Part shown: in pieces, positions 1,001 through 28,184 of the stretch
Layout: each line of letters begins with the position of its first letter
How positions within the stretch are numbered: the stretch's first letter is position 1
DNA from: Adineta vaga
Taxonomy: Eukaryota > Animalia > Rotifera
Reading direction: 5' to 3'
Assembly (NCBI GenBank): GCA_021613535.1
Contig: CP075492.1
Span: forward strand, 19,406,001-19,470,000
Length of the DNA: 64,000 nucleotides
Position numbers and translations under genes: made by a program
The notes under the pieces: model-generated
Databases searched by the model: none
Told to the model about the DNA's origin: nothing
What the model saw: the letters and a program-made list of their open reading frames with translations, nothing else

Positions 1001-2684
1001 AAATGTTTCGACTCAGTAGTGATGGTTCTTTCAAATCTAGTTAAAATGAATTTATACTACACTTCTCTGATGTGATGACAACAGAAAAGCGAAAAATCAC
1101 GAGGTTGTGAATGTGGTTCAAGAGATAGTTTATAGCCGCACTCAACCCTCACACTGCTGTCTCTTATTTCTCTCAAAAGTTATTTAAAAATATTCACTAA
1201 ACAGATGTTAATACAGCAGTCACATATGATAGAAAAACAGATCTGATCGATATTTTATTACTTCGATATTAATTGAAGTAGAATCAAACGGCGCAGAAAA
1301 CTAGAGCGTTGTGTTTCTATTAGACTGTACACAAAAAAGTTTCGTGAGGCTTGTTATACGATATTCAGAGATCATTGTCACTACTTTCGGATACCTCCCA
1401 ATCTCTCTGAATAAGACTTAGCCTTGAAATATACCATCTAACTTTAGAGTGCATACTGTACTGTGGGTTCAAGTTTCAGGTAAACATGTATAACTTGATG
1501 GAAAAGAGGCATGAGCGTTTATCCTTTTCAAGTTTTTTTATATCTGTCTAAGATACACTGACTGTAAAGGGTTCGAACTGAACAGTGGTTAATCACTTCA
1601 TATGGTTTCCTTGAAAGACGCCTTTAAGGAGATTGTGAGCATGCTAAAGATGTTTTTTCAACATTTTCTGCAAAGTTCAAGTAATTGTTCGAATTCGTTG
1701 CAGGCACCGGAAGGTTTTTTAGTTTCATAGCATTTACACAACTTTTTCTATTTCCTATTAAACGTTTCTGTTTTTCTATAATAGCTTATTTTTCATTATA
1801 TGGAAAGTGATAATTCTCAATATTGAAAGGATGAGTCTTAGGAACATAAAATGTTTGTTCACGTGTCAGGGGTCAAAGGCCAACGACTGAAGGTCAAAGA
1901 TCAAACTTCAAGAGAAAGGTGTGGGTGGAGCTGCGAGTGAAGGTAGGTTATGAATGAAATGTGGATATGGTTGAAGTGAGGGATATTGAATCGCGTGAAG
2001 GGCTGGCGTGGGTTTATTATTGGTGTGGGTGAGGTCACGGATATAAGCGTGGTTGATGACTTGATGGTGGTGTGGGTTAGATATTAGATATGAGTATGGG
2101 TGAGTGGAATATGTGTGACTGAAGCGAGTGACGTGAAGCTAGCTGTGGATCGGTTGTTGGTTTCGATGTTGGTGAGGTGGAGAATGTGTGTTTTTTTTGT
2201 ACTTGATGGGGAGAATGTCACGGATATGAGTGTTGTTGGGATATAGGTGTAACTCCTGTTGGGAATTGGAATGAAGTGGAGGATGTTGGGATGAATGCAA
2301 ATAGAGGTTTGCCTATCGTTCTGGTGGAATTTGAGTGGGAGTTATGAAGATGTGTCGAGCAAAGTGATCGTCTGTGGACTAGATTTTTGAGTTTGCCAGA
2401 GATGCGATTGCAGTCTTTACGTTTCATTATGAAATGATAGGCGTTCTCAAAGAGGTACGGGTATTGCATCAATTAATCCGATGCAATATCGAAAGGTGCA
2501 ACCCTAATCGACGGTCGCGTCCGATCTACAGTAATCGATAGTTTTTAGTCAACTGTCGGGAATGCTGGACGTTTACGTAGACACTGTCACAACTGCGAGT
2601 GTTTTCTTTCAAGACTGAGTCTAGAGCGGCTCGATGGGCCGACGCGTTACTTGTTACTAAGTTTGTTACATACGGCAAGCTATC

Positions 2685-5945: not shown

Positions 5946-6862
5946 CATCTTGAGATTGTGGATCATGCTATACTCTTAACCCTAACCCACACCCATTTAC
6001 AGTGCTCGCTGAACCTTCGAAACTAATTTGTGATTGTTTTTGTTCATTTCTGATTGTTGGTAATTTACGAGTTACTCGCTTGTAACATGCTTTATGAGCA
6101 TGTTGATGTATGAGACTTTATTCAAATAAGTCAGTTTGATAATACACCTTATATCCCAGACGAAATCTATTCTCGCTTTCTTTCAAATGAATCATTATAT
6201 AAAAACTTTTATGAAGACCAGAAGTCTTTCTACATACTATACATGTTCTTGCTATATATGGCATTTTGATAAATATCTAAAATAAACAAATAAAAGGAAC
6301 GGACTCAACAAAAAAATGGATAAATGACATTGCACATGTCACGTACAGTCTAGTCTATCATTATCACATTGGTCGTCGGTCACTAACACTCATCTGCAAT
6401 GTCTACCAATAAGGTAACAGTCCATAGATGTCGCACACCGAGCTGTTTCATTTTAATTTAGGAAAAAAAACAACATCGTAAAAAAGTCTTATTTTAAATA
6501 AAGCAATTTTCTGCCAAGTTTCAGTTCTAAAAAACGAGTTCCACACCAAAGTGCATAATCTAATCGCCTGATAAATGCACTTTCATCTCTATGTGATAAC
6601 TGACTATTATATAAAAAAAAACTACAATAAATAAAAATACATTGTAATATATAGATGAATTATGATAATCATTTATTATTTATATAATTTAAATAGTCTT
6701 GTTCCGACGTTTGACTGCAAAAGATCTTTTTCCTTTTGTCGTTCTTCATGTGTCTATTGATGAATCACGGCGACAACTTCATTATCGTTATGTCAATAAA
6801 TACGTATATCATATGACAAAAATAAAGAACGCTTTTACTTTGTTAAGAAATTGTTTTTTAAG

Positions 6863-8683
6863 ATGGAAAGCGCAAAACGTATTAAGTGTGAAAAAACGTC
6901 GTTTAATTGTTTACCAAATGAAATTCTTTCGGTGATATTTGAGTATCTATCTGCAAATGATATTATTTATACATTCTTTTTTCTAACTGAACGATTAAAT
7001 AATTTCTTATTACACAATCAACGTTATTTCAACTATTTGGAATTACCAACAGCAGATTTAGATATATGGGAAATCATTTTATCAATAATTGGTTCAAAAA
7101 TCAAATGTTTAAATGTAACAACAACTCATTTATTCTTTCCGTTAAGATATTTTCCAAATCTAAAATCGTTAATGATTTCTTCATTATATGGTTTATCAGA
7201 AGAGAAATTGACATATATCATTGAAAATGATCTATTGAAAAATTTATCTTCATTAAAAATCAAACAAGAAAAGATATTTCCCAATCCATATCTTCCAGAT
7301 AATGTTATTTGTGAAGATAAGATTTTGAAAAAAGTTTTTAATGAAAATAATTCCTTAGAAATATTTGAATATTCATTAATGATACAACTATCTGTCATAT
7401 ATTCAGATACAGATAATTATCAAATCAATTATAATTTAAATTCATTAACATTAGTATTAAGTAGTTTTCGAAGCATATTTGTTATAATTCGATTTACACC
7501 AAATTTAAAATATTTTAATGTTAAAACACGAATACCTTTTACGAATGAACAACAACCAATTGAGAAAACTAATGTTAAATTAAAAGAATTATATTTAACA
7601 TTGAATAAACCTCCTAATAACGATGGTAATCTTCATCTAATAATTGATGGAATAAAACAATTTTCATCCTCATTAGTTTGTTTATCACTCGATTTAGTTG
7701 ATTATTCTGTTCGAGGTATAAATGAATTTCCATTTGATAGTTTACAACTTCCACAATTATTGAAATCAATGAAAGAACTGAAAACATTTCATCTCTACAC
7801 TAAACAACCTTCTTTTCAATATCATAATAATATTGATTTATCACAATTTAAAGATCAATATTGGTTTAAACAAAATTCATCATTTGGAATGCATGGCGAT
7901 TATATTTATACATTACCATTTTATTTCAATAATATTTATGATTGTTTTCAAGATTTTAGTGAAATTAAATCAAATGATTGTAAGATTTTAGAGAGCAATT
8001 CTCGAATATGGTCTAAAGTTAAATCTATTCAATTGCCTAGAAGATGCGGATATGATAGAAATTTTGTAAAAGAACTCAAAATGAAAATGCCAAAGTTAAA
8101 TTTAATTAAATTTGATGCTTATGGGACTTCACCTAAAATTCAAACAGATGATTCATCATCTGAAAATATAGATGTTACATTAGATAATGTAAAGACTATT
8201 CAATTTATTCGAGGATCGATTGAAAATGAAAAAGATTGGATTATTTCTTCATTACCAAATTTAAAACATTTGATTTTATGTGATACAGAAATACCTTCAA
8301 AAGATAGTCAATTAACTCGAATATTAAATGAAAATATTCAACGATTAGATATAGATGCACATTGTCAAATTGAACAATTCATAGAAATAAGTTCTGTTTG
8401 TTTTTCAAATGTTGAAAATATTAATTTTTATTTAAATGATAGTTCAAAAAGTCCTGAATGGTATGCAGAGATTGTTTTGAAAATATTAAACAATTTTCAA
8501 AATTTAAAGATAATGATGATTCGTATTGCTCATCGATGTCACGGAGATGGAGAATTATCTTTTCCTGAAAAAAATTTGACCAAAATTATTGAATATTTCA
8601 ATATGAATGAAATGCATAAAAACTATCAAGTGGAATATATGAAAGAGTACACTTTATTTTTAAACATGTCTTTTCAAAATTAA
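6863..8683 (+). CDS. F-box domain protein with LRR-like C-terminus (expanded rotifer family), intronless
   Basis: N-terminal FNCLPNEILSVIFEYL is an F-box signature, followed by repeated xxFPNLKxL LRR-like units. The ATG is at 6863. Confidence 0.85.
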   Translation: MESAKRIKCEKTSFNCLPNEILSVIFEYLSANDIIYTFFFLTERLNNFLLHNQRYFNYLELPTADLDIWEIILSIIGSKIKCLNVTTTHLFFPLRYFPNLKSLMISSLYGLSEEKLTYIIENDLLKNLSSLKIKQEKIFPNPYLPDNVICEDKILKKVFNENNSLEIFEYSLMIQLSVIYSDTDNYQINYNLNSLTLVLSSFRSIFVIIRFTPNLKYFNVKTRIPFTNEQQPIEKTNVKLKELYLTLNKPPNNDGNLHLIIDGIKQFSSSLVCLSLDLVDYSVRGINEFPFDSLQLPQLLKSMKELKTFHLYTKQPSFQYHNNIDLSQFKDQYWFKQNSSFGMHGDYIYTLPFYFNNIYDCFQDFSEIKSNDCKILESNSRIWSKVKSIQLPRRCGYDRNFVKELKMKMPKLNLIKFDAYGTSPKIQTDDSSSENIDVTLDNVKTIQFIRGSIENEKDWIISSLPNLKHLILCDTEIPSKDSQLTRILNENIQRLDIDAHCQIEQFIEISSVCFSNVENINFYLNDSSKSPEWYAEIVLKILNNFQNLKIMMIRIAHRCHGDGELSFPEKNLTKIIEYFNMNEMHKNYQVEYMKEYTLFLNMSFQN

Positions 8684-12797: not shown

Positions 12798-13534
12798 ATT
12801 AAATGTTAGCAAAATTCGTAAAATATCATATTATAATCTCTAAAGTCTTTCTTATATCAATAAACCATCTTGAGGGTGTGAATACTTATAAGGACTAAGA
12901 AGAAATACACTCACATACATCCATCTTAAATGCATCGAAAAAAGGAAGAGGAAGTTGTAGCTTTCCATCTGTTCTTTTATGTACGTCTATATTTTTTCTC
13001 ACATCTGCAAGAAATTGCCACATCAACATCAAGTGATAATAATAAACTGAATTCAGTTATTTCGCTCTAATCAAAGATTTATTACTGATATATATTTACG
13101 AAAGAAATCTAATCATGTATCAAATTTTATTCTTATCTTTAAATTTGATATAATGACATTGAATACGAAATTATTTTCTATCACTCTTATTAACATTCGG
13201 AAATCAAATAAATTTTATTATAATAGACAACGATTGTCTATTTCTTAAGTTCTGTCATAATGTTTATATAGTGTTATGTTAAGCAGAAAATATAAAAACA
13301 TTTCTTTTTATAGGGTGTGGGTGTCCGTCTAGAACACACACCCAAATTTATGGTTAAAATATCACTTCGGAAGTATAGTGATGTGTAAAAGCTCGATAAT
13401 GATTATGTAAGCTAAGTATGTCGGGATGATTTTTAAATTTTAGAACACATTTAGTCGAGGATTCTCAGTTTTGAATCTCTTTTTGTTTAATTTTTAAATG
13501 TACTTTGGAAAATTCTAAAATTTGTAGTGAAAAG

Positions 13535-14013
13535 ATGTCTAAGAGCGACGACAGAAGTCTTGCTATTGTGTATTGTCGACAGGGAAAATTCGACGAAGCG
13601 TTGGGAATGTATGATAAAATCTCTGGATATCAAGCTAAGCTGAAATTTATTCTTCAAATACAACTTGAATCTCTTTCATTCGATCATCCTGATTTTGTTA
13701 GTACGTACAATATATTAGGTATTGTACATTATAGACATAAGAAATAAGTATATAGATACGTTAAGTTGGTTTCTGAAAGCTTTAAAATGTCAGCGGATAA
13801 TATTTCGTCAGAATCATTTGAATATTGCAATATCTTACAATAATTTAGCGCTAATATACGCATATGCACATGATTTCGATAAAGCTATTGCTATAGTTTA
13901 GAAACAAACTTTGGAAATACGTCATAAACTATTACCATAGTAGATCATCCTCTTATTCAGAAGACTTGCGGTAATTTTGTTGCCATCTTTTGTGATCAGA
14001 GAAACTACTACTA
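13535..14013 (+). pseudogene. TPR (kinesin-light-chain-like) protein remnant
   Basis: LAIVYCRQGKFDEALGMY...HPDFVSTYNILGIVHY, continuing in other frames as IAISYNNLALIY with stops and frameshifts. Confidence 0.7.
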
Positions 14014-14082: not shown

Positions 14083-14310
14083 AATTATATCTAAACCAAG
14101 TTTTTCTATTTCTTCTTTAATCAAAAATATTTCATAATCTCGATATCTAAATATTGTTATACAGGTTAATTTATGTAAATTTTTGATTAAATATAATATA
14201 TCTGATTGATTTAAAGAACATTCAAGTTGTTCAAGATTGCTAAATACTTCACAGAATCGTTCTAATTGATCTGAATTATTTTTTGTATTGATAAATACAA
14301 AAAATAGTTT
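14083..14310 (-). pseudogene. Fragment resembling the C-terminus of rotifer F-box/LRR-like proteins
   Basis: Minus strand reads DQLERFCEVFSNLEQLECSLNQSDILYLIKNLHKLTCITI. It runs directly into a GGGTATGGGTTTGGGTGAG arm at 14065-14082. Confidence 0.4.
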
Positions 14311-14447
14311 AAATTGTCAGTAAAACTAATTTTTTTATTAAATATTTGAAAAAAAATCTTTAAATAATCAAATAAATTTTTCTCTGAGTCCGAAAAAAGG
14401 TCAATATATAATTTTACGATAAAAAAACCGCCCAGTCTCGAATGTTA

Positions 14448-17400
14448 TCAAGGTGCTGTATAAGTAATTTTTAGATATGGTAAAGCTTGTCCATATCGAT
14501 AGACAATATATTCATGATATTGAAAACCAGCCCCCTGACCATGAACTGAATGATGATTTTGTGGTGCTGCACTTAGAGAATTATTTGTTTGTACTTGCAC
14601 AGATTCAATACCTAATACAACTTTATTATAAAAAATAACACGACGATTTGTAGTTGGATCGGGTGGTGCATAATTATTCGATTTTCGAGGATCATCAGCA
14701 AAATAGGCACCACGTCCTAAATAAAAAACAACGAAAAGTTTGTTTTTTTTTTCTCAGAAGAATTTTTTAACCTAACCCCAAGCTCCAGTAGGCGAAAAAT
14801 ATCGATCATCAAAACCACGATCAATAATTCCTTGAATAGCTTCACCACTTGTTCCATGAAATAATTCACGTTCTTTTGGATCATTTCCTGGACATTCTTT
14901 TGCGATTGTTCGTTTCATATATTCATATAATGCCTCAATATTAGGATTTTTTATTTGTTCAATTGTAATTACTTTCATTCCTGGAATTTTTTTCATTTCT
15001 GTAACAAGATTTTGATACAATAAAGTGGATAATGGATAAGGAACGAGTAATGCATTACAAGTTGATGGTGGATTTGGAATAAATGAAAATGGTGTACCAA
15101 TTTGTGTCCATCCTCTTGCTTTCATTCTATCAATTCGTTCTGCAACTGTTCCTGATGTATTTGGACCATTTTCACCATCAATTGGACGTAAAACTTGAAA
15201 ATTTTTATTTCGAATATTTTCAACGATTGTTTCTAATTCAATTGGATATGTTCCACCTGTTATATCAACACGCATACCTAAATCTTTTGTATATTCACGT
15301 TCTAATGATAAATTACTAACATCAAAATCAATTCGATCATGTGTTAAGGCAATATGTGGTTCAATTAAATCCATTGTAAACGGTCCGGTCTTCGTTTTTT
15401 CATCAACAATAACAACATACCGCCAATCTTGACGAACTGATCTTGCATGAATTTCATAACTATATAATGTATCAAGAAAAGCTTCAATATCAAAGATTTT
15501 CGATTGAGGTAAATGACAATCGAGATCGGCGGGAACAAGTTCTACGGGTAATCTTGGAACTTGACTTGTTGTCGTGGATGATGATATCCATTGATCTGGA
15601 GGTAAATTTGGTGGTCGTGATCGGTGATTTCCAACAACCCAATCTCGAACAAAACCACCTTCTAATCGACAATGATATTGACATACAGCAATCCAAGCAA
15701 CAACTTCCATACGTGTTTCACGTGTTGCATCAGGACCTTTTAAACTTCTCCATCGATCGACTGATGTTCGTTCAGGATCAGTTATATTACCAATTTTCGC
15801 TTCCATATCACGAAATTTATCACGTATTTGTGGTTTTAATACACGAGGTGAAACACCTGAATTTGGATCTCGAATAACTGCACACAGACGAAGCCAAAAT
15901 AAAAATGATCGAAATTCTTTTTCTACAGCTTGATTTTGTGAATCAAGACCTTCAACATTGACTTCAATTGTTCCATTATTTTTATGCATTTTTGTTCGTA
16001 CTTTTACTTGACATTCGGATTCCCATCGCCATCTTAATGGACCAAACAGATCTCCTGGCATACTTGTTACACTCTTCAAATTTCTTGCTAAAGTATCATT
16101 CGCTTGATCAGATGATAAAGTAAAACTATATGATGTTATTAATTGTTGTCGAATATAAAGTTCAGCATTGAGAATATGACCAGATGGTCCATGAAAAACT
16201 AATTTACCATTATTTATATGTATTTGTATATAAGGAAATTGTTGAATTGCTTGTTGTAATATATTATTATTTTTTAATTTTTGTTCTTCATTTTGATTTA
16301 ATTTTAATTCTCGACTAAATGTATATTCTAACCATGAAGATTCAATTTGTCCAACAAATGATAAAATTGCTGATGAACGTATTGCTGTTAAATATCGAAC
16401 ATCTCGTGCTAAAACTAATGAAGCTGGTAATGCACCTTTATTTCCTGTTCTCAATGTTGATGTACGATCAATAACTGCAATTGAACATGGTTCATCTAAT
16501 GAATCTTGTTGTTGATGAATATTGTATTTAACATATTGTTGAGTTTTACCTTGAAGTAATTTTTGTGATGCATAAACTTTATCAGAAAAACCTTTTAATA
16601 AAGCTTTGACGATATTTTCCCAATTTCCCGATTGAATTTGAGCAAGTTCACGATATTCATCGGATAAAGTAAATGCTTTTTCTAAACTTTTATATCGTCG
16701 TAATGCTGCTTTAATAACATGTGCAATAGGAGTTAAACGTTTACTAGCACAAAATCGATCAGGATTAAATTCTTTTGGTGTAACTGCATCACGAACTGAT
16801 AAGACAGTATTCATTACTTGTAAAAGTGTCATAAAATCACCTTCGGAACGTTTATATTCAGCTGGAATTGATTTTAATATAGATGAAGTATTTAGAACCG
16901 ATAATATTGATGATAAAATAATTAAATCACGACCACAACGATATCGTGTTAATGCAGCATGAACAGCTTTTGACATTGATAAAGATGTAAAATCAGGTAA
17001 TTCTGCAATTGATTTACCTAATGAAGTAAAATATTCATTTGGTGAAGGACCAATAAATTCTAGTCGTTGTAATTGTTTAATTGCATCATCAATAAATTCT
17101 CGTTTTGGTTTATCAGGTAAATATTGAATAAAATCACGTAAGTTTGTTCTTAAACGAGATTTTCGTAAAGAAAATTCAATATTAACTAAATCTGATTGAC
17201 ATATTTGTGGTATTGGATATTCTCGTTGTTCACCTGGTAAATAATCATACAATGCATAATATTCTCCTGGTTGTGTTCGACCGAGTCGACCTAATCGTTG
17301 TTTTGTTGTTGATTTTGCTGATTTAATTTCTTCTAATTGTGTTCGTTCTAAAGCTAAACTATATACAGACATATTAATTAAACCTGTATCAATAACATAT

Positions 17401-20400
17401 TTTAAACATGGAAATGTTAACGATGTTTCAGCAACAGTTGTTGAAAAGAAAACACTTCCTTCTTCGATGAATTTTTGTTGTTCAATTGCTGATTGAGATT
17501 GAATAAGTGGATAAGCAATAATAGCACCTTTAGTAAGTTTTTTTAATAATTGACAATTTTCATGTGTATCTTGTGTTGAACTAACAAAACAAAGAATTTG
17601 ATCATAACGATTTCGTTCACTGTAAAGTTTTTGAACGAGATCAAGAAGATTTTCATTCGGTGTTCGATGAATTTTTACAGGATATAATGTTGATAATGAA
17701 GTTAAATTAAATTCTTTTAAAGAACAACCAGGAATATTTCGAAATAATGTTGGAACTGATTGATCTAATGTTGCAGATGATATAATTAATTTCATTTTTG
17801 TATGTAAAGATGGATTTAATTTTAATAAACGAGCAAATAAAGCCAAACATAAATCAATATTAATTGAACGTTCATGAACTTCATCAATAAAAAATACGAC
17901 CGATTTGTTGACATTTGTACTTTCAGTTATGAAATTTACATCATTTAATAAACGTTCTTTTAATAAACCATCAGTTAAATAAAGAATTTTCGCTTTAACA
18001 TTCTTTTCAGCACCACTTACTGCCCATCCACTTATATCATCATTTACCATAGAATTAACACGTTGTGAAATTAAATTACATGGTAAACGTCGTGGTTGAG
18101 TAACAATTACTTTATCATAACCATCGGCAATTAATAATGCCGTAAGAAGAGTAGATTTACCAGAACCAGTTGCCGTTGAAATGGTAACAATCGTATTTGT
18201 TTGAATATGATTTAAAAGATCAATTGATGAATTAAATAAAGGTAATTGTAAAAGAAAACAATGATAAAAGATCATTAATCTTTGTAATAATGATACAATC
18301 ATATAAAAATGTTTTAATTCATAACCTTTATATTTTTTATCTATTTTAAGAATATTTTTAAGTTTATTAATATGTTTATTAAGAATTGAAATTGATTCTT
18401 TATTTGGTATTGTTTTTGTTGATTTTTCTTGTAATATAATATGTTCATGAATAAATTCTTCAAATGCTTTTATTTTTATTTCTTCAATATCATTTGTAAA
18501 TGTTTCATTTTTTAAATAATCATTTGTTAAATCATTAATATCTTTTTCAAAATCTCGTTTTGGATTTTCAATTGAAATATCTAAGAAATTTTTTAATTCA
18601 TCATGAATATATTTAGAAAATTTCTTTATATCATCATTATAATATTCATTAACTAATTTAACTAATGAATTATAATAAGATTTCCAATAAATCATCTTTT
18701 TTGAATGTATTTGTTGAATTAATCTTAAGAATTTTTGAATTTTTTCATTGATTTTTCTATTATAATATTTTTCTATGGAATTTATTTGTTGAATCAGATT
18801 TTCAATTCTTTGAAAAATCTTTTTTAATGTTTCATGATGAATTTGAAAACCTCGAAGAATAATTTGATTTTCATATTGATCATCTAATTCCATTAATGGT
18901 ACATTATCTTGAAAATAATTTTTTAAAGGAAAATCAATTTTTCTCAATGTATTAAAGATTAATTTAAATTTTGAAAGTATTGATAAATTTGATTTCGGTA
19001 AAGTATATGTTCGTGTTAAAATATTTTGTGATGTTTGTTTAATTAAATTTTCATGTGCATTTTTTGTTTTAATTTCAGTTTGTAAACGATCAATTTCTAT
19101 CATTGTTGATTGTAAAATTTCATTATTATGTTCATTTAAATTTTCTAATTGTTCAGCAAGTTGACTTTCTAAACAATTGATTTTCTCTTGTAATTGTTTA
19201 TTTTCAAATTCTAAAATAAATTTTGCTTTTTCTTCTGTATTATTATCTATTGTATGTATTTGTTTCACTTTGATTTGTTCCGGTGGATCATTTAGTTGAT
19301 CAATAGATTCAATTGTACTTGATATTGAGATATCAATATCCATTGCTTGTGAATCATCATGTAATAAATCATCTAAACTCCAAGTACCCATATTTTGATT
19401 TGAAATATTTGTATTATCATCATCATCATCATCAATTGTTTCATTTTCATCTGGAATTTCTAATTCTATTATATCATTTTCATTCTTTGTTTTAATTGAT
19501 TGTTCTAATCGTTTTGTTGTTAAAGGTATTGGATTTGAATTTTGAATCATTTTAAAATTATCTAAAACTTTAATTGTATCTTGATCATTTGATGTATTTG
19601 AAATTAATTTTGGTATCCAACGAAGAAAACCAATGATTGTTTTATCATTATTACTAAATTGAAATTCATAAAGATTACATTTAATAATTCGATTTTCATG
19701 ATAATTTGTATGAAAATTACAATTTAAATCAAGATAACGTCTTCGATAATTCATTGCTTCATCTAATAAAGTATTTCGTTTTGAATCACATGTAAACCAA
19801 CAATTTAATTTGATTTCAAATTTACTATCATAAACAGTTGGAAATGTTTTTGAATCTAATGATGGTGTATCATTTGTTTTCAATTCATATTTAATAAACA
19901 TCAATTGCCAAACACAATGAATATCAAAATAGCTACACTTGAACCTCGACATCGTATCCATGCTAAACTATCTTGATTAGATGGATTTGGTTCTTGATTT
20001 TTTCCACCACGTAAAAATGTCAATAGATTAACATTATATGTACCTCTATTAGAACTTAAATAAGTTGTTGGATTAAATAATTGATTATTCTTTTCTACAA
20101 CAAAAACAGAAGATAAAATATGATGTTCACTGATTGTAAATTCATCCCATTGTAATCCTTCTACTGGTTTATATTCCCAAATACAATTTGTTGGTTTTCG
20201 ATCATAACAATTTAAAACAGGTTCATTTGGTAAAGACATATTCGGGAGATTTGTATATGAAGTGACGAGAAAATCATTAAAGAAATTTTGAATTGCTCCA
20301 TGGAATCTACCATTTTGAATTGGAGTTTCACCTAATTGATTTCTTGAAAAATAATTTGCTCCTTTACTAATTAAATATTTAACAATATCTAAATTATTAT

Positions 20401-21112
20401 TAAAACAAGCAGCATGTAATGCTGTTGAAGCAAATTTTGGATCAGGATTATAAGTAAGATCTGTTCGATTGTTATCATCACTGATCAAAGTAAATGCCAT
20501 TTCACATTCATTTTGAGCATTTACAGAACAACTAAGTGTTTCAATTAAATGTTTTACTAATGGAAGATTATTACTTTTTGAAGCTGAATATAAGAATGTT
20601 GTACCCCAAAAACCTGGTTTATCTTTATATAATGGAAAACGTTTAAGAAAAGTTTCTACTGTTTTTAAATCTCCTTTCAATGCAGCTGGATAAGCACGTG
20701 CAGCTGATAATAAACCATTTAAATCATGTTTAAATGAATACAGAATATTGAGAGTAAGTCCTTCTGTAAATACTTTTTGATTAGAATCAAAATGATATTG
20801 ATATAAATGTTTTTCAATATAACTTGAACATAATTCTGATAATTGTGGTAAAGAATCTCTTAGAATATTTTGAATATCATTTGTTAATGTATTTAATAAT
20901 TCAGCTTCTTCGTTGTCGATCGTAAATGTATTTACATTATTATTTTGAATTGAATTCTCATGTAATGGATAATTCGTAATATTGTCCGTTGTTGTTGTTG
21001 TTGTTGGACGTATTTGTGGCGGTTCTTTTTTTTGTTGTTTTAAAACTTCATCGATTTTTTGAATGATTGAACTTAAACATTGATTTAATCTTGTTTCATC
21101 AACAGATTCCAT
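14448..21112 (-). CDS. Giant multidomain protein: ankyrin repeats - WWE-like - coiled coil - DEAH-box RNA helicase (HA2) - class II nucleotidyltransferase-like domain - PARP catalytic domain. One frameshift at ~19925 and one intron at ~14774-14718.
   Basis: Ankyrin motif is TALHAACFNNNLDIVKYLISKGAN and the WWE-like motif is IWEYKPVEGLQWDEF. Helicase motifs are TATGSGKST, TQPRR, DEVHER, SSAT, STTVAETSLT and QRLGRLGR. NTase-like motifs are EGGFVRD...DLD...DFDVSNL. PARP motifs are LFHGT / GAYFAD / HEYIVY, with the last exon 14717-14448 found by manual splicing. Confidence 0.85.
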
Positions 21113-26159: not shown

Positions 26160-28184
26160 ATGTTTCCTAATCAAGCATCGGCTCAATTAGAAAATGATGT
26201 TCATATACAAAACATTGATAAAGTTAGAACTGACGATGGAAAAATTTTACATTGTGAACCTATTGTTTTATTTGATGATGATGAAGTTGACGAATTTATG
26301 TTATTGGATAAAATGTTAAATCAGTGCTTGACTTTATATAAAACAAAATTTGCTAAAGATGTATGTTCTCATTATTATAACAATATGGAACCAATCAAAT
26401 CTTGGATAAATGAGATAATGCGTGAAGAGAATATTCCAGATATCAAAACATGGAAAACATTATTTTTACAAAGCAAACATTCATTAACATTTAAATATTT
26501 ACGCTTTCTATCTTCAATGTATCATCTAATATTTCGACTATGTACTGTTGAATTACATCCTGAACATAAATTTATATTTGTTTCTACTAAAGAAGTATTA
26601 GATTTTTCTATTAAGGATACGAAAATTTCTGTTTATGTTCTAACAGAACAAAGCGGTGATTCAACAGAGACAAGACCAGTGAAAGGAATATTTATTACAG
26701 GTGACACTACTTTAGTTTATCTTCATAATCATTTAGAATCTACAATTGATATAAAAATCAAGGTTGATTTATTGAATAAAATTGCATCGTATTATCAATG
26801 TCAAGCTGATAAAATTAATACAACTCATCATTTAGAATCCTTACAACAATGGAATCGTGCACTGAAATATTACAATGATTCGTTAACACTCAATCGTAAA
26901 CATCTCCAAGCAATGTTAGGATATGCTAAATGTTTAATAATGTTAAACAAATACAGTTTAGCTGAGAAATTCTTAATAGAAAATGTTGATGATAAAGAAT
27001 ATTTTCGTGATTCAGAAGAAAGATGGTTTTTATTAGGCGTTTTGAAACGTAAATTAAGGAAGTACGATGAAGCTGAGGTTGCGATTAGAAATGCACTGAA
27101 ATTGCAAAATAATTATGTTGACGCAAAAAATGAATTAGACTTTATATTTCGATTGAAAGAAGAAACGATTAAAAAACGAATTGGAATTTACAAAAGTATG
27201 GCATTACAACATGTTGAACCTAAGTCTGATCAATATAATATTCTTTCTATTGATGGAGGTGGTATAAGAGGATTAATACCAGCTGTATGGATGAGTGAAT
27301 TGGAACGTAGAACTGGTTTAAGTAGCAGTTCAATGTTTCATATGATGGCTGGAACATCAACAGGAGCAATTGTAACTGCTTGTCTTTCCTTACCTGATCT
27401 ATCGAGTATTAGACGACCTCGTTATAGAGCTGCTGATATTGTTGAATTGTACACATTACATTCTGACAAGGTCTTCGCTCGTACATCAAGATGGGAAAAT
27501 CTTTTTGGACTTAAGGCGATCTATGAAGAAAAAGGTAAAAAAGATTTGTTTGAAGAGTATTTTAAGGGTATTCGATTATCACAAGCAATAACTGAACTTA
27601 TTATAACGACGGTTAATTCGGGTAGTAGTGCAACAGAATTATTTCGACAAAGTGATGGCTTGAAGGATCCTAGTCGCAATCATAAATTAAGTGATATTCT
27701 CATGTGTACAACAGCTGCACCAACCTATTTTCCACCTTACAAATTAAGTAATTCTGTTTTTGTCGATGGCGGAGTTCAAGCTAACAATCCAACAATGATT
27801 GCTTATGCTGAAGCGTGTGCTAAAAATATCAATCGTGATAACATTTTTATTCTTTCTCTCGGTACTGGTGATTACGTACCCGATCCATTGAATCCGAATG
27901 CACAGCGAAGTCTTTTATTTTGGGGAAGTAATTCTACTAGCGTATTAAAAGTCATTTTTGATGGTCCACAGAATAATATTGATTATCAATTGAGTAGTAT
28001 ATTAAACACTGATAAGTATCATCGTTGGCAGATTTGGCTTGAAAATCCAATTGTACTGGATGATATACGAAAAGAAACATTGGATTATTTGGTGGAACTT
28101 GCTCATAGTCATTTTGAAGAAATGGATGCTTTCGATAATAATCATCGGTTAGGTAAACTTATCGAACGGTTAAAAACGTATTAA
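26160..28184 (+). CDS. TPR-containing patatin-like phospholipase
   Basis: About 3 TPRs lie at roughly aa 205-330. The patatin catalytic motifs DGGGIRG, GTSTG, AAPTYF and DGG are all intact. The ATG is preceded by a TTTTTTAG acceptor-like site, so upstream exons may exist or may have been lost. Confidence 0.9.
   Translation: MFPNQASAQLENDVHIQNIDKVRTDDGKILHCEPIVLFDDDEVDEFMLLDKMLNQCLTLYKTKFAKDVCSHYYNNMEPIKSWINEIMREENIPDIKTWKTLFLQSKHSLTFKYLRFLSSMYHLIFRLCTVELHPEHKFIFVSTKEVLDFSIKDTKISVYVLTEQSGDSTETRPVKGIFITGDTTLVYLHNHLESTIDIKIKVDLLNKIASYYQCQADKINTTHHLESLQQWNRALKYYNDSLTLNRKHLQAMLGYAKCLIMLNKYSLAEKFLIENVDDKEYFRDSEERWFLLGVLKRKLRKYDEAEVAIRNALKLQNNYVDAKNELDFIFRLKEETIKKRIGIYKSMALQHVEPKSDQYNILSIDGGGIRGLIPAVWMSELERRTGLSSSSMFHMMAGTSTGAIVTACLSLPDLSSIRRPRYRAADIVELYTLHSDKVFARTSRWENLFGLKAIYEEKGKKDLFEEYFKGIRLSQAITELIITTVNSGSSATELFRQSDGLKDPSRNHKLSDILMCTTAAPTYFPPYKLSNSVFVDGGVQANNPTMIAYAEACAKNINRDNIFILSLGTGDYVPDPLNPNAQRSLLFWGSNSTSVLKVIFDGPQNNIDYQLSSILNTDKYHRWQIWLENPIVLDDIRKETLDYLVELAHSHFEEMDAFDNNHRLGKLIERLKTY

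Follow-up and report, generated by a model that had tools for sequence, protein, structure and literature searches.

A multi-copy gene family of bdelloid rotifers that joins helicase, nucleotidyltransferase-like, and PARP domains in one polypeptide

We analyzed a 64,000-nt stretch of the Adineta vaga genome (contig CP075492.1, positions 19,406,001 to 19,470,000; hereafter the window), in which a gene on the minus strand encodes, on one chain and in this order, a variable N-terminus, ankyrin repeats (ANK), two divergent WWE-like modules, a spacer, a DEAH/RHA helicase, a tandem KH-like module, a nucleotidyltransferase (NTase) head, and a tankyrase-like PARP domain (table 1). As judged from the sequence, all three catalytic centers retained their signature residues. 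We are highly confident that the gene and its architecture are real, and on balance we favor the view that it is a constrained member of a multi-copy bdelloid family, whose product would act as a single-chain, three-enzyme machine directed at nucleic acid, most likely in RNA surveillance. None of the domains is new in kind; for a helicase, a template-independent NTase, and a PARP joined together, however, no characterized counterpart turned up in the literature searched, where no paper was found on this architecture, this family, or the Pfam family DUF5769 discussed below. This agrees with an earlier annotation made from the window sequence alone (the original prediction), whose author knew of no characterized protein with this architecture.

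The DNA is AT-rich (~30% GC), and two long minus-strand open reading frames (ORFs), 21112..19901 (403 aa) and 19961..14772 (1,729 aa), overlap by 61 nt in different frames. The original prediction had taken them as one gene, which proved right, but had overlooked the frame break between them at 19929/19930. Homologues were colinear over the ORF overlap, passing from ...WIRCRGSS (frame 1) through exactly three residues to FDI(H/Y)C... (frame 2), for example in ...CRGSS-VAN-FDI.... Contigs from four public runs were placed on 14300-20299, those of X1 and X2 being of RNA type and that of X6 of deep DNA type; an extra base behind 19929 was carried by the sole X6 contig at this place (depth 130) and by one X2 contig. 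The colinear homologues and the extra base in other data indicated that both ORFs form one exon with no intron at this place, and that a 1-nt error or a frameshift allele is probably present in the assembly. With the extra base counted, the product comprises 2,201 aa. A 91-nt GT..AG intron (19856-19946) that would join the two ORFs was ruled out by the colinear homologues with three residues between the frames; moreover, the stretch was retained in an RNA-type contig, and two runs showed the one extra base behind 19929. The downstream ORF was 100% identical to the NCBI protein I4U23_016986, a model that starts at Met563 of this ORF and lacks the N-terminal 960 residues of the chain; the missing base is probably the reason for this internal start. 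In the reference annotation, a gene model that is cut short thus stands beside what is probably a 1-nt error or frameshift allele.

The 60-nt intron near the 3' end of the gene was skipped in contigs of the two RNA-type runs (158 letters on the shorter side) and retained in X6, and the NCBI model uses the same junction. Because the intron was skipped in RNA-type but not in DNA-type contigs, the gene is transcribed and its PARP domain is completed by splicing; the Tyr and Glu of the catalytic triad indeed lie in a separate exon (14451-14716) behind this intron, as previously suggested. Spliced RNA contigs covered the PARP, NTase, KH, and helicase parts, and paralogues, orthologues, and distant homologues of 1,950-2,480 aa showed the same domain order in single ORFs. 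Together with the continuous frame and the NCBI model, these data support the placement of all domains in one gene, rather than in separate genes, and the single polypeptide of about 2,200 aa that the original prediction had proposed.

The helicase motifs that had been described as complete were all found in ORF 14772-19961 (-). Motifs I, Ia, Ib, II (DExH), III, V, and VI (QRxGRxGR) were present between 17277 and 18167, as expected of a DEAH/RHA member, and Pfam matched Helicase_C (2.9e-7) and DEAD (7.2e-6), both above the cut-offs. In phmmer searches against PDB sequences, the helicase matched Prp16, DHX8, Prp2, Prp22, and HrpA at E 1e-32 to 6e-37 (from 1e-30 when Prp43 is counted as well), and the alignments to DHX8 and Prp43 ran through chain residues ~505-661, that is, through the winged-helix, ratchet (HA2), and OB regions. 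The Pfam HA2 and OB models gave no score in the window protein, and HA2_N reached 0.0014 in a Euglena homologue. Motifs I-VI and the winged-helix-ratchet-OB arrangement are thus shared with known DEAH/RHA helicases (Prp16, DHX8/Prp22, Prp2, Prp43/DHX15, HrpA, and DHX36; E 1e-25 to 6e-37), which, unlike the rotifer protein, carry no NTase or PARP domains.

For the NTase, the sequence strings on which the original prediction had relied were located at aa 1431, 1477, and 1543 of the downstream ORF (window positions 15671, 15533, and 15335). An AlphaFold model from 32 homologues (pLDDT 84.9, pTM 0.83) displayed the helix-strand-GG-helix...strand(DxD)...strand order of pol-beta NTases. The ten best PDB matches of this model in Foldseek were all class II tRNA-processing enzymes belonging to a single set (E 3e-4, probability 1.0), followed by FAM46, Cid1, CCA-adding enzymes, TglT, TUTases, and pol lambda. 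A wide search with VIA-align, which is independent of Foldseek, placed 3wfo, 3aql, and 3h37 first (Z 8.7, 8.1, and 8.1 over 153-161 residues), and the other 47 rows were nearly all pol-beta-fold proteins; in a second structural comparison, ranks 1-12 were all class II (Z 9.4-7.5 over 153-164 residues) and FAM46 came next at 7.5. Among 15 homologues down to 24% identity, G36, F38, R40, D41, and D82 of the segment were invariant, G37, D80, and D146 were conserved in at least 90%, position 132 was always D or E, and W42 and F129 were also invariant or nearly so. The conserved positions would correspond to the GG loop, the two metal carboxylates, the third acidic residue of the next strand, and the DF..N motif.

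These structural ranks and conserved residues point to a class II head fold with GGxxRD and DxD (motif A). Of motif B (RRDFTxNA), the rotifer DRIDFDVSNL keeps D-F..N-L, 64 aa after DxD and without RR, in a part where the hhalign alignment was not confident. The nearest fold is that of the class II NTases (CCA-, A-, and CC-adding enzymes and bacterial poly(A) polymerase I), with which the rotifer head shares a strand-GG-helix with ..RD.., a DxD strand, a third acidic strand, and, tentatively, D-F-x-x-N-L, in the same order and at similar spacing. It differs from them in lacking similarity at the level of hidden Markov models, in a family-specific insert of 30-35 aa between the GG helix and the DxD strand, in having DRIDFDVSNL in place of RRDFTxNA, and in being embedded in a 2,200-aa multidomain protein with no neck, body, or tail; only ~90 residues lie between head and PARP, neither motif D (EDxxR) of the neck nor the body and tail was found there, and PolyA_pol_RNAbd gave no match. 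The Pfam family DUF5769 (PF19073) matched the segment below threshold (20.4-20.7 bits against a gathering cut-off of 26.1, E 4e-4) and did so too in 28 of the 32 homologues, from the third strand to the DF..N region; a PF19073 scan gave no match in the A. vaga genome or in the control genomes and is hence uninformative. Matches to PHROGs were weak, the annotated "nucleotidyltransferase" phrog_1614 appearing in 15 of 32 members (best E 0.001). The modeled segment therefore appears to be an NTase head of a class-II-like kind, whose active site looks intact; it falls outside the definition of the PolyA_pol family, and we consider it likely to be catalytic. The structural check that had been suggested for this segment thus returned a pol-beta fold with class II heads as best matches, so that of the class II signature originally claimed the fold held and the GG..RD, DxD, and DF..N residues proved to be those left unchanged in distant homologues, whereas class II membership proper was not supported. 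Besides this family and the CCA-enzyme genes (L001-L003), A. vaga has a divergent stand-alone protein with a PolyA_pol head (L004, G000:C3:2900734-2904075; ORF 1069-2181 (-), a 371-aa open frame; Pfam 9.6e-7, GGAIRD...DID).

Between helicase and NTase lies a feature that the original prediction had missed, the tandem KH-like module. An AlphaFold model from 30 homologues (pLDDT 84.8) consisted of two beta-alpha-alpha-beta-beta-alpha units and matched the KH domains of MEX-3C, PNPase, FUBP1, Nova, and PCBP2 at Z 8.3-7.8, and many KH domains at Z 8.3-7.0 (root-mean-square deviation 1.7-2.9 over 58-67 residues), in keeping with a type I KH fold. Foldseek matched the model to the tandem-KH proteins Krr1/Pno1 (E 2e-5), and Pfam gave only a weak KH_DTX3L match (0.021) on these residues. 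No GXXG loop was present between helices 34-42 and 45-52 of the modeled segment.

The two PARP exons were searched separately, and the contiguous orthologues P0005 and I4U23_016986 were taken to represent the whole domain. In P0005, PARP (PF00644) scored 54.3 bits, and the closest PDB sequence was tankyrase-1 (8e-19), followed by PARP14, PARP12, PARP10, and PARP15; its H, Y, and E aligned with the tankyrase-1 triad, and the window holds the same three residues, as the original prediction had stated. N-terminal ankyrin repeats and a C-terminal H-Y-E PARP are common to the rotifer protein and tankyrase (PARP5a/b), its best sequence match; however, the rotifer protein has no SAM domain and carries ~1,600 residues (WWE, helicase, KH-like, and NTase) between ANK and PARP. 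With PARP14, PARP9-DTX3L, PARP12, and ZAP/PARP13 it shares WWE-like modules, a C-terminal PARP, and KH-like modules (through the weak KH_DTX3L match), and PARP14, PARP12, PARP10, and PARP15 were significant PDB matches of the catalytic domain. In contrast to these antiviral PARPs, it has the H-Y-E triad with tankyrase as best match and no macro domains or CCCH fingers, whereas none of PARP14, PARP9-DTX3L, PARP12, and ZAP/PARP13 has the helicase or the NTase.

At the N-terminal side, the ankyrin repeats that had been predicted were recovered by Pfam (Ank_2, 1.7e-12). The ~230 residues behind them form two modules with a W..W/F...R.(I)R pattern. Pfam WWE (PF02825) gave no match at E<=10 in the window's own two segments, and WWE profiles gave none against PDB sequences; WWE was, however, matched in 6 of 20 aligned paralogues (best 2e-7) and, in two stretches, in the paralogue P0075 (1.1e-10). 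The single WWE domain of the original prediction thus left no signal in the window sequence itself, and by homology to the aligned paralogues we infer two divergent WWE modules, the second of which had been passed over. The spacer that follows is 420 residues long.

The family has many loci in bdelloids besides A. vaga. A word search returned 87 long homologues, most of them 2,000-2,260 aa with ANK, helicase, and PARP, and all named ones came from bdelloids (Adineta, Rotaria, and Didymodactylos); the A. vaga genome holds about 13 loci of the family. An exhaustive profile search gave 243 representatives at E<=1e-3, including a Euglena gracilis transcript with helicase and NTase, an MMETSP transcript with helicase, NTase, and PARP, and, on contigs of 23%, 52%, and 62% GC, proteins of 1,950-2,480 aa that combine ANK, helicase, NTase, and PARP; in one such distant contig, the PARP exons lay downstream behind introns. 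The survey across taxa that had been recommended thus yielded the full architecture in bdelloids and a helicase-NTase(-PARP) core in Euglena and other protists, an occurrence outside rotifers that the original prediction had not mentioned. In public records the NTase domain is unannotated, and the proteins are called only "PARP" or "RNA helicase". A word search for stand-alone relatives of the NTase (profile A5) returned only rotifer gene fragments among the 120 matches listed. Across 22 full-length paralogues, median identity was 62% in the RecA domains, 58% in the NTase, and 56% in the PARP, against 26-47% elsewhere, so that conservation is highest in the three enzymatic domains. Compared with the A. 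ricciae orthologue, the ratio of nonsynonymous to synonymous substitution rates (dN/dS) was 0.11-0.15 (about 0.13) over the C-terminal part of the helicase, the KH-like module, the NTase, and the PARP, at a dS of about 0.8.

Two further loci bear on the gene models of this family. The A. ricciae locus (L009; CAJNOJ010000608.1, 1-7995) consists of four overlapping reading frames and contains an N stretch; thus, its public 1,727-aa model is probably incomplete, too. In the GC-rich contig of a distant eukaryote (L006, JGI 3300050206; 6811-7765), the gene caller stopped the helicase-NTase at a (TG)n-rich intron and assigned the PARP exons to another gene, of 177 aa; this locus, too, probably encodes a helicase-NTase-PARP protein in reality.

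The NTase subtype is shared with giant viruses, a relationship absent from the original prediction. In a feature search of the ESM Atlas, the NTase adjoined the phage clusters "Poly A polymerase head" and Gad2 (score 0.95), and a shape search led to Nucleocytoviricota clusters (TM 0.60). Foldseek against BFVD returned 58 viral proteins at E<=1e-3, among which giant-virus entries named "NT pol-beta-like" and "Poly A polymerase head" reached E 3e-8; the top of the list comprised a moumouvirus "NT pol-beta-like" protein, a fadolivirus RING protein, a tupanvirus protein, mimivirus L685, and a pithovirus "Poly A polymerase head". Among viral contigs, a pattern scan picked out a 377-aa protein with a C-terminal RING-H2 finger in a giant-virus metagenome-assembled genome (L007:2770-3900 (+); IMGVR_UViG_GVMAG-M-3300021958-28_000001), which has GGFVRDWI, the insert, DxD (DIDIY), YDFSVN, and the KM..KGW helix; hhalign aligned the rotifer NTase with it at 91.5% over the GG-insert-DxD part, insert included. 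The giant-virus proteins (L007, moumouvirus, and mimivirus L685) thus have GGFVRDW, the insert, DxD, and the R..KM..(K/R)GW helix in common with the rotifer protein, but are 200-470 aa long and have no helicase or PARP. The likeness to phage Gad2 rests on language-model features, not on alignment; Gad2 itself is a predicted NTase known solely for acting against Gabija (bioRxiv 10.1101/2023.05.01.538930). In mimivirus-like viruses, structure matches also revealed sister proteins in which the same subtype is fused to F-box and BTB domains.

From this anatomy, with helicase, KH-like module, NTase head, PARP, WWE, and ANK on one chain, the protein is best read as an RNA-end-directed surveillance enzyme, and we propose how it might work. 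The DEAH/RHA core would engage a single-stranded 3' RNA tail and translocate 3'->5', as its relatives do, and the KH-like pair and the NTase head, placed directly behind the OB domain of the helicase, could act on the captured 3'-OH end. Untemplated nucleotide addition might then tag or block the RNA. In TRAMP, the Mtr4 helicase, the Trf4/5 poly(A) polymerase, and the RNA binder Air1/2 cooperate on RNA 3' ends, and the rotifer protein would place this logic of a helicase with a tailing enzyme on a single chain. The likeness is by analogy only: TRAMP consists of three polypeptides, its helicase is of the Ski2 type and its NTase of the Cid1/Trf type, and it has no PARP; the Trf4 core appeared on the NTase fold list at Z 4.7. 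The PARP could ADP-ribosylate itself, its neighbors, or phosphorylated RNA ends, and the two WWE modules could read the ADP-ribose mark for clustering or autoregulation, a WWE-PARP-KH logic like that of PARP14, PARP12, and DTX3L-PARP9. The ankyrin repeats, the fast-evolving N-terminus, and the spacer might give each paralogue partners of its own, and the whole may serve in the surveillance of foreign or selfish RNA, such as that of viruses and transposons. Nucleotidylation of RNA 3' ends is a tentative assignment of the NTase reaction, somewhat short of an even chance. A role in defence or conflict, for which we see roughly balanced odds, is favored over others because the family has many paralogues with a fast-evolving periphery and an NTase subtype in common with viral proteins. 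Doubtful, in our view, is a bolder version, in which the protein would be an ancient eukaryotic innate-immune effector, present from Euglena to bdelloids and possibly spread by horizontal transfer, whose helicase captures foreign RNA, whose NTase marks or blocks its 3' end, and whose ADP-ribose signal is read by its own WWE modules, the NTase module being also used, on the opposing side of the arms race, by giant viruses and phages (Gad2-like). If the activities are real, the protein would be a compact, testable model for coupling RNA capture, RNA-end modification, and ADP-ribosylation. The family also sets in a cellular context an NTase subtype found otherwise in uncharacterized giant-virus proteins and, as judged by features, in Gad2, a phage protein that counters defence, and it extends what is known of the expansion of genome-defence genes in bdelloid rotifers.

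Several observations weigh against an RNA-end-directed three-enzyme machine. The Z scores of the NTase (8-9) barely exceed the stated background of the tool (7-8); despite these modest values, the class II assignment was preferred because the lists were homogeneous, the class II alignments were longer, and the motifs matched. Pfam PolyA_pol (PF01743) gave no match at E<=10 on the NTase segment or on the 32 homologues, a six-frame genome scan with PF01743 found four other loci, among them A. vaga's CCA-enzyme genes and one divergent head protein, and not the helicase-NTase-PARP family, and searches of PDB sequences (phmmer; profiles A1 and A5) gave nothing relevant for the NTase. With hhalign, the rotifer family aligned to A. 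vaga's own CCA-enzyme heads at 6-9% probability and over the GGxVRD helix alone; once the insert was deleted, GG, RD, and DxD were paired with these heads (64%, E 6.5e-5), but the deletion was itself an edit guided by the hypothesis. In class II enzymes, tRNA is held by neck, body, and tail domains, all of which are missing from the rotifer head, and the fusion of its subtype to RING, F-box, or BTB in giant viruses hints at a protein-directed rather than an RNA-directed role. Moreover, KH-like units without a GXXG loop do not imply nucleic-acid binding, an H-Y-E triad is no proof of poly-ADP-ribosylation, and the assembled copy in the window carries the frameshift.

If the 1-nt frameshift is real in this haplotype, the gene would be a young pseudogene, as the ORFs overlapping in two frames and the start of the NCBI model only at Met563 of the downstream ORF might suggest. 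We regard this as unlikely, given a single disruption in 6.6 kb, the frame-restoring base in both the sole deep DNA-type contig and an RNA-type contig, and a dN/dS of 0.13 against the orthologue; even with a real frameshift, the helicase-NTase-PARP part could be made from Met563. The same protein might also be a housekeeping factor of RNA processing or decay (a fused TRAMP-like or DHX-type cofactor) rather than one of defence. Its helicase is closest to spliceosomal and ribosome-biogenesis DEAH enzymes, its tandem KH fold to Krr1/Pno1 and to exosome/PNPase KH domains, all domains are under purifying selection, and the gene is expressed in ordinary RNA data sets. However, there are ~13 diverged paralogues per haploid genome, with a fast-evolving N-terminus, WWE, and spacer; PARP, WWE, and ANK are typical of conflict and signaling proteins; and the named records among animals are bdelloid only, which argues against a conserved core factor. 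A housekeeping role appears rather unlikely.

Other alternatives concern the substrate. The NTase-like domain could be a ligand-binding or protein-modifying module (protein AMPylation, or nucleotide or ADP-ribose binding) tied to ADP-ribosyl or ubiquitin signaling rather than to RNA tailing, as its nearest viral relatives are fused to RING, F-box, and BTB, the rotifer protein joins it to PARP and WWE, KH_DTX3L matches weakly, and no body or tail is there to hold tRNA. Nevertheless, invariant metal-binding carboxylates and an invariant GG loop make NTase catalysis likely, the domain stands directly behind an RNA helicase and KH-like units, and toxins of the MenT/TglT type, which likewise appeared in the fold lists, target tRNA ends; we give such a module only a small chance. 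An NTase head that makes a nucleotide second messenger upon RNA binding by the helicase, in the manner of OAS or cGAS, was proposed in the original prediction, and the pol-beta fold is indeed common to OAS2, cGLR, and CdnE (Z 4.9-5.1). This is highly improbable, as class II heads scored 3-4 Z units higher with 50% more residues aligned and no receptor domain was evident; to our knowledge, no class II-type head makes cyclic or 2'-5' oligonucleotides. It is also improbable, if a little less so, that the protein is a PARP of the DNA-damage or desiccation response, with a helicase that works on DNA, R-loops, or G-quadruplexes in the course of the genome repair that bdelloids are noted for. The DEAH/RHA helicases DHX36 and DHX9, which unwind DNA structures, were among the helicase matches, and A. 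vaga PARP genes are among radiation-induced and spaceflight-repressed genes, with the gene ontology term for ADP-ribosylation enriched (PMC12220480). However, the helicase-NTase-PARP family was identified in none of the papers, no DNA-break-sensing modules (zinc fingers, BRCT, WGR, or PBZ) appeared in the Pfam scans, and the KH-like modules and the class II-like NTase point to RNA.

Table 1. Coordinates of the gene and its predicted features in the window
Feature	Position	Strand	Basis or remark
Whole gene	14448..21112	-	Start codon 21110-21112, stop codon 14448-14450
Variable N-terminal region, aa 1-125	20738..21112	-	Matches no family; ~31% identity among paralogues
Ankyrin repeats	20258..20737	-	Pfam Ank_2 1.7e-12 (48.2 bits), Ank 1.2e-11 (44.7 bits)
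WWE-like module 1 (C.WEYK..W..F...AWIRCRGSS)	19937..20245	-	Aligned paralogues
1-nt indel (frameshift)	19929..19930	-	Relative to other A. vaga data; divides the two listed ORFs
WWE-like module 2 (FD..LWQ...W.C...G.IRWIPK)	19542..19928	-	Alignment A3 and second WWE stretch of P0075
Acidic, coiled, low-complexity spacer	18282..19541	-	Rich in I/K/N/L/E/D; least conserved, ~26% identity
DEAH/RHA helicase, RecA1 and RecA2, motifs I-VI intact	17262..18239	-	Pfam, phmmer, motifs
Helicase motif I, GSGKST	18150-18167	-	
Helicase motif Ia, TQPRR	18087-18101	-	
Helicase motif II, DEVHER	17868-17885	-	
Helicase motif III, SAT	17766-17777	-	
Helicase motif V, TVAETSLT	17415-17438	-	
Helicase motif VI, QRLGRLGR	17277-17300	-	
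Winged-helix, ratchet (HA2), and OB region	16377..17261	-	phmmer to Prp43 and DHX8, reaching query residues 493-571
Tandem KH-like module, no GXXG loop	15867..16349	-	AlphaFold2 model, structure matches; residues ~1205-1365
NTase head, class-II-like	15102..15734	-	AlphaFold2 model, structure searches, motifs
NTase motif GGFVRD	15642-15659	-	
NTase motif DLD (DxD)	15519-15527	-	
NTase conserved acidic residue D1531, in TMDLIEPH	15369-15371	-	Codon
NTase motif DRIDFDVSNL	15309-15338	-	
NTase R..KM..RGW helix	15108-15137	-	
PARP catalytic domain, N-terminal half	14777..14999	-	Pfam PARP 0.0013 (18.7 bits), below cut-off; triad His 14856-14858 (ELFHGT)
GT..AG intron, 60 nt, phase 1	14717..14776	-	Absent from X1 and X2 contigs, kept in X6; spliced in I4U23_016986 (P0001)
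PARP catalytic domain, C-terminal half	14451..14716	-	Pfam PARP 4e-9 (36.7 bits), above cut-off; Tyr 14703-14705 (GAYFADD), Glu 14511-14513 (YHEYIVY)

Elsewhere in the window, a 610-aa ORF at 6851-8683 (+) had no Pfam match at E<=0.001, and short ORFs with TPR_10/TPR_12-type repeats at 13505-13901 (+), just beyond the 3' end of the gene, look like fragments of TPR genes. At 26160-28184 (+), 5 kb upstream of the gene, a 674-aa ORF encodes a patatin-like phospholipase domain (Pfam Patatin 8.4e-28) behind TPR repeats, an architecture that is also typical of conflict and immune proteins.

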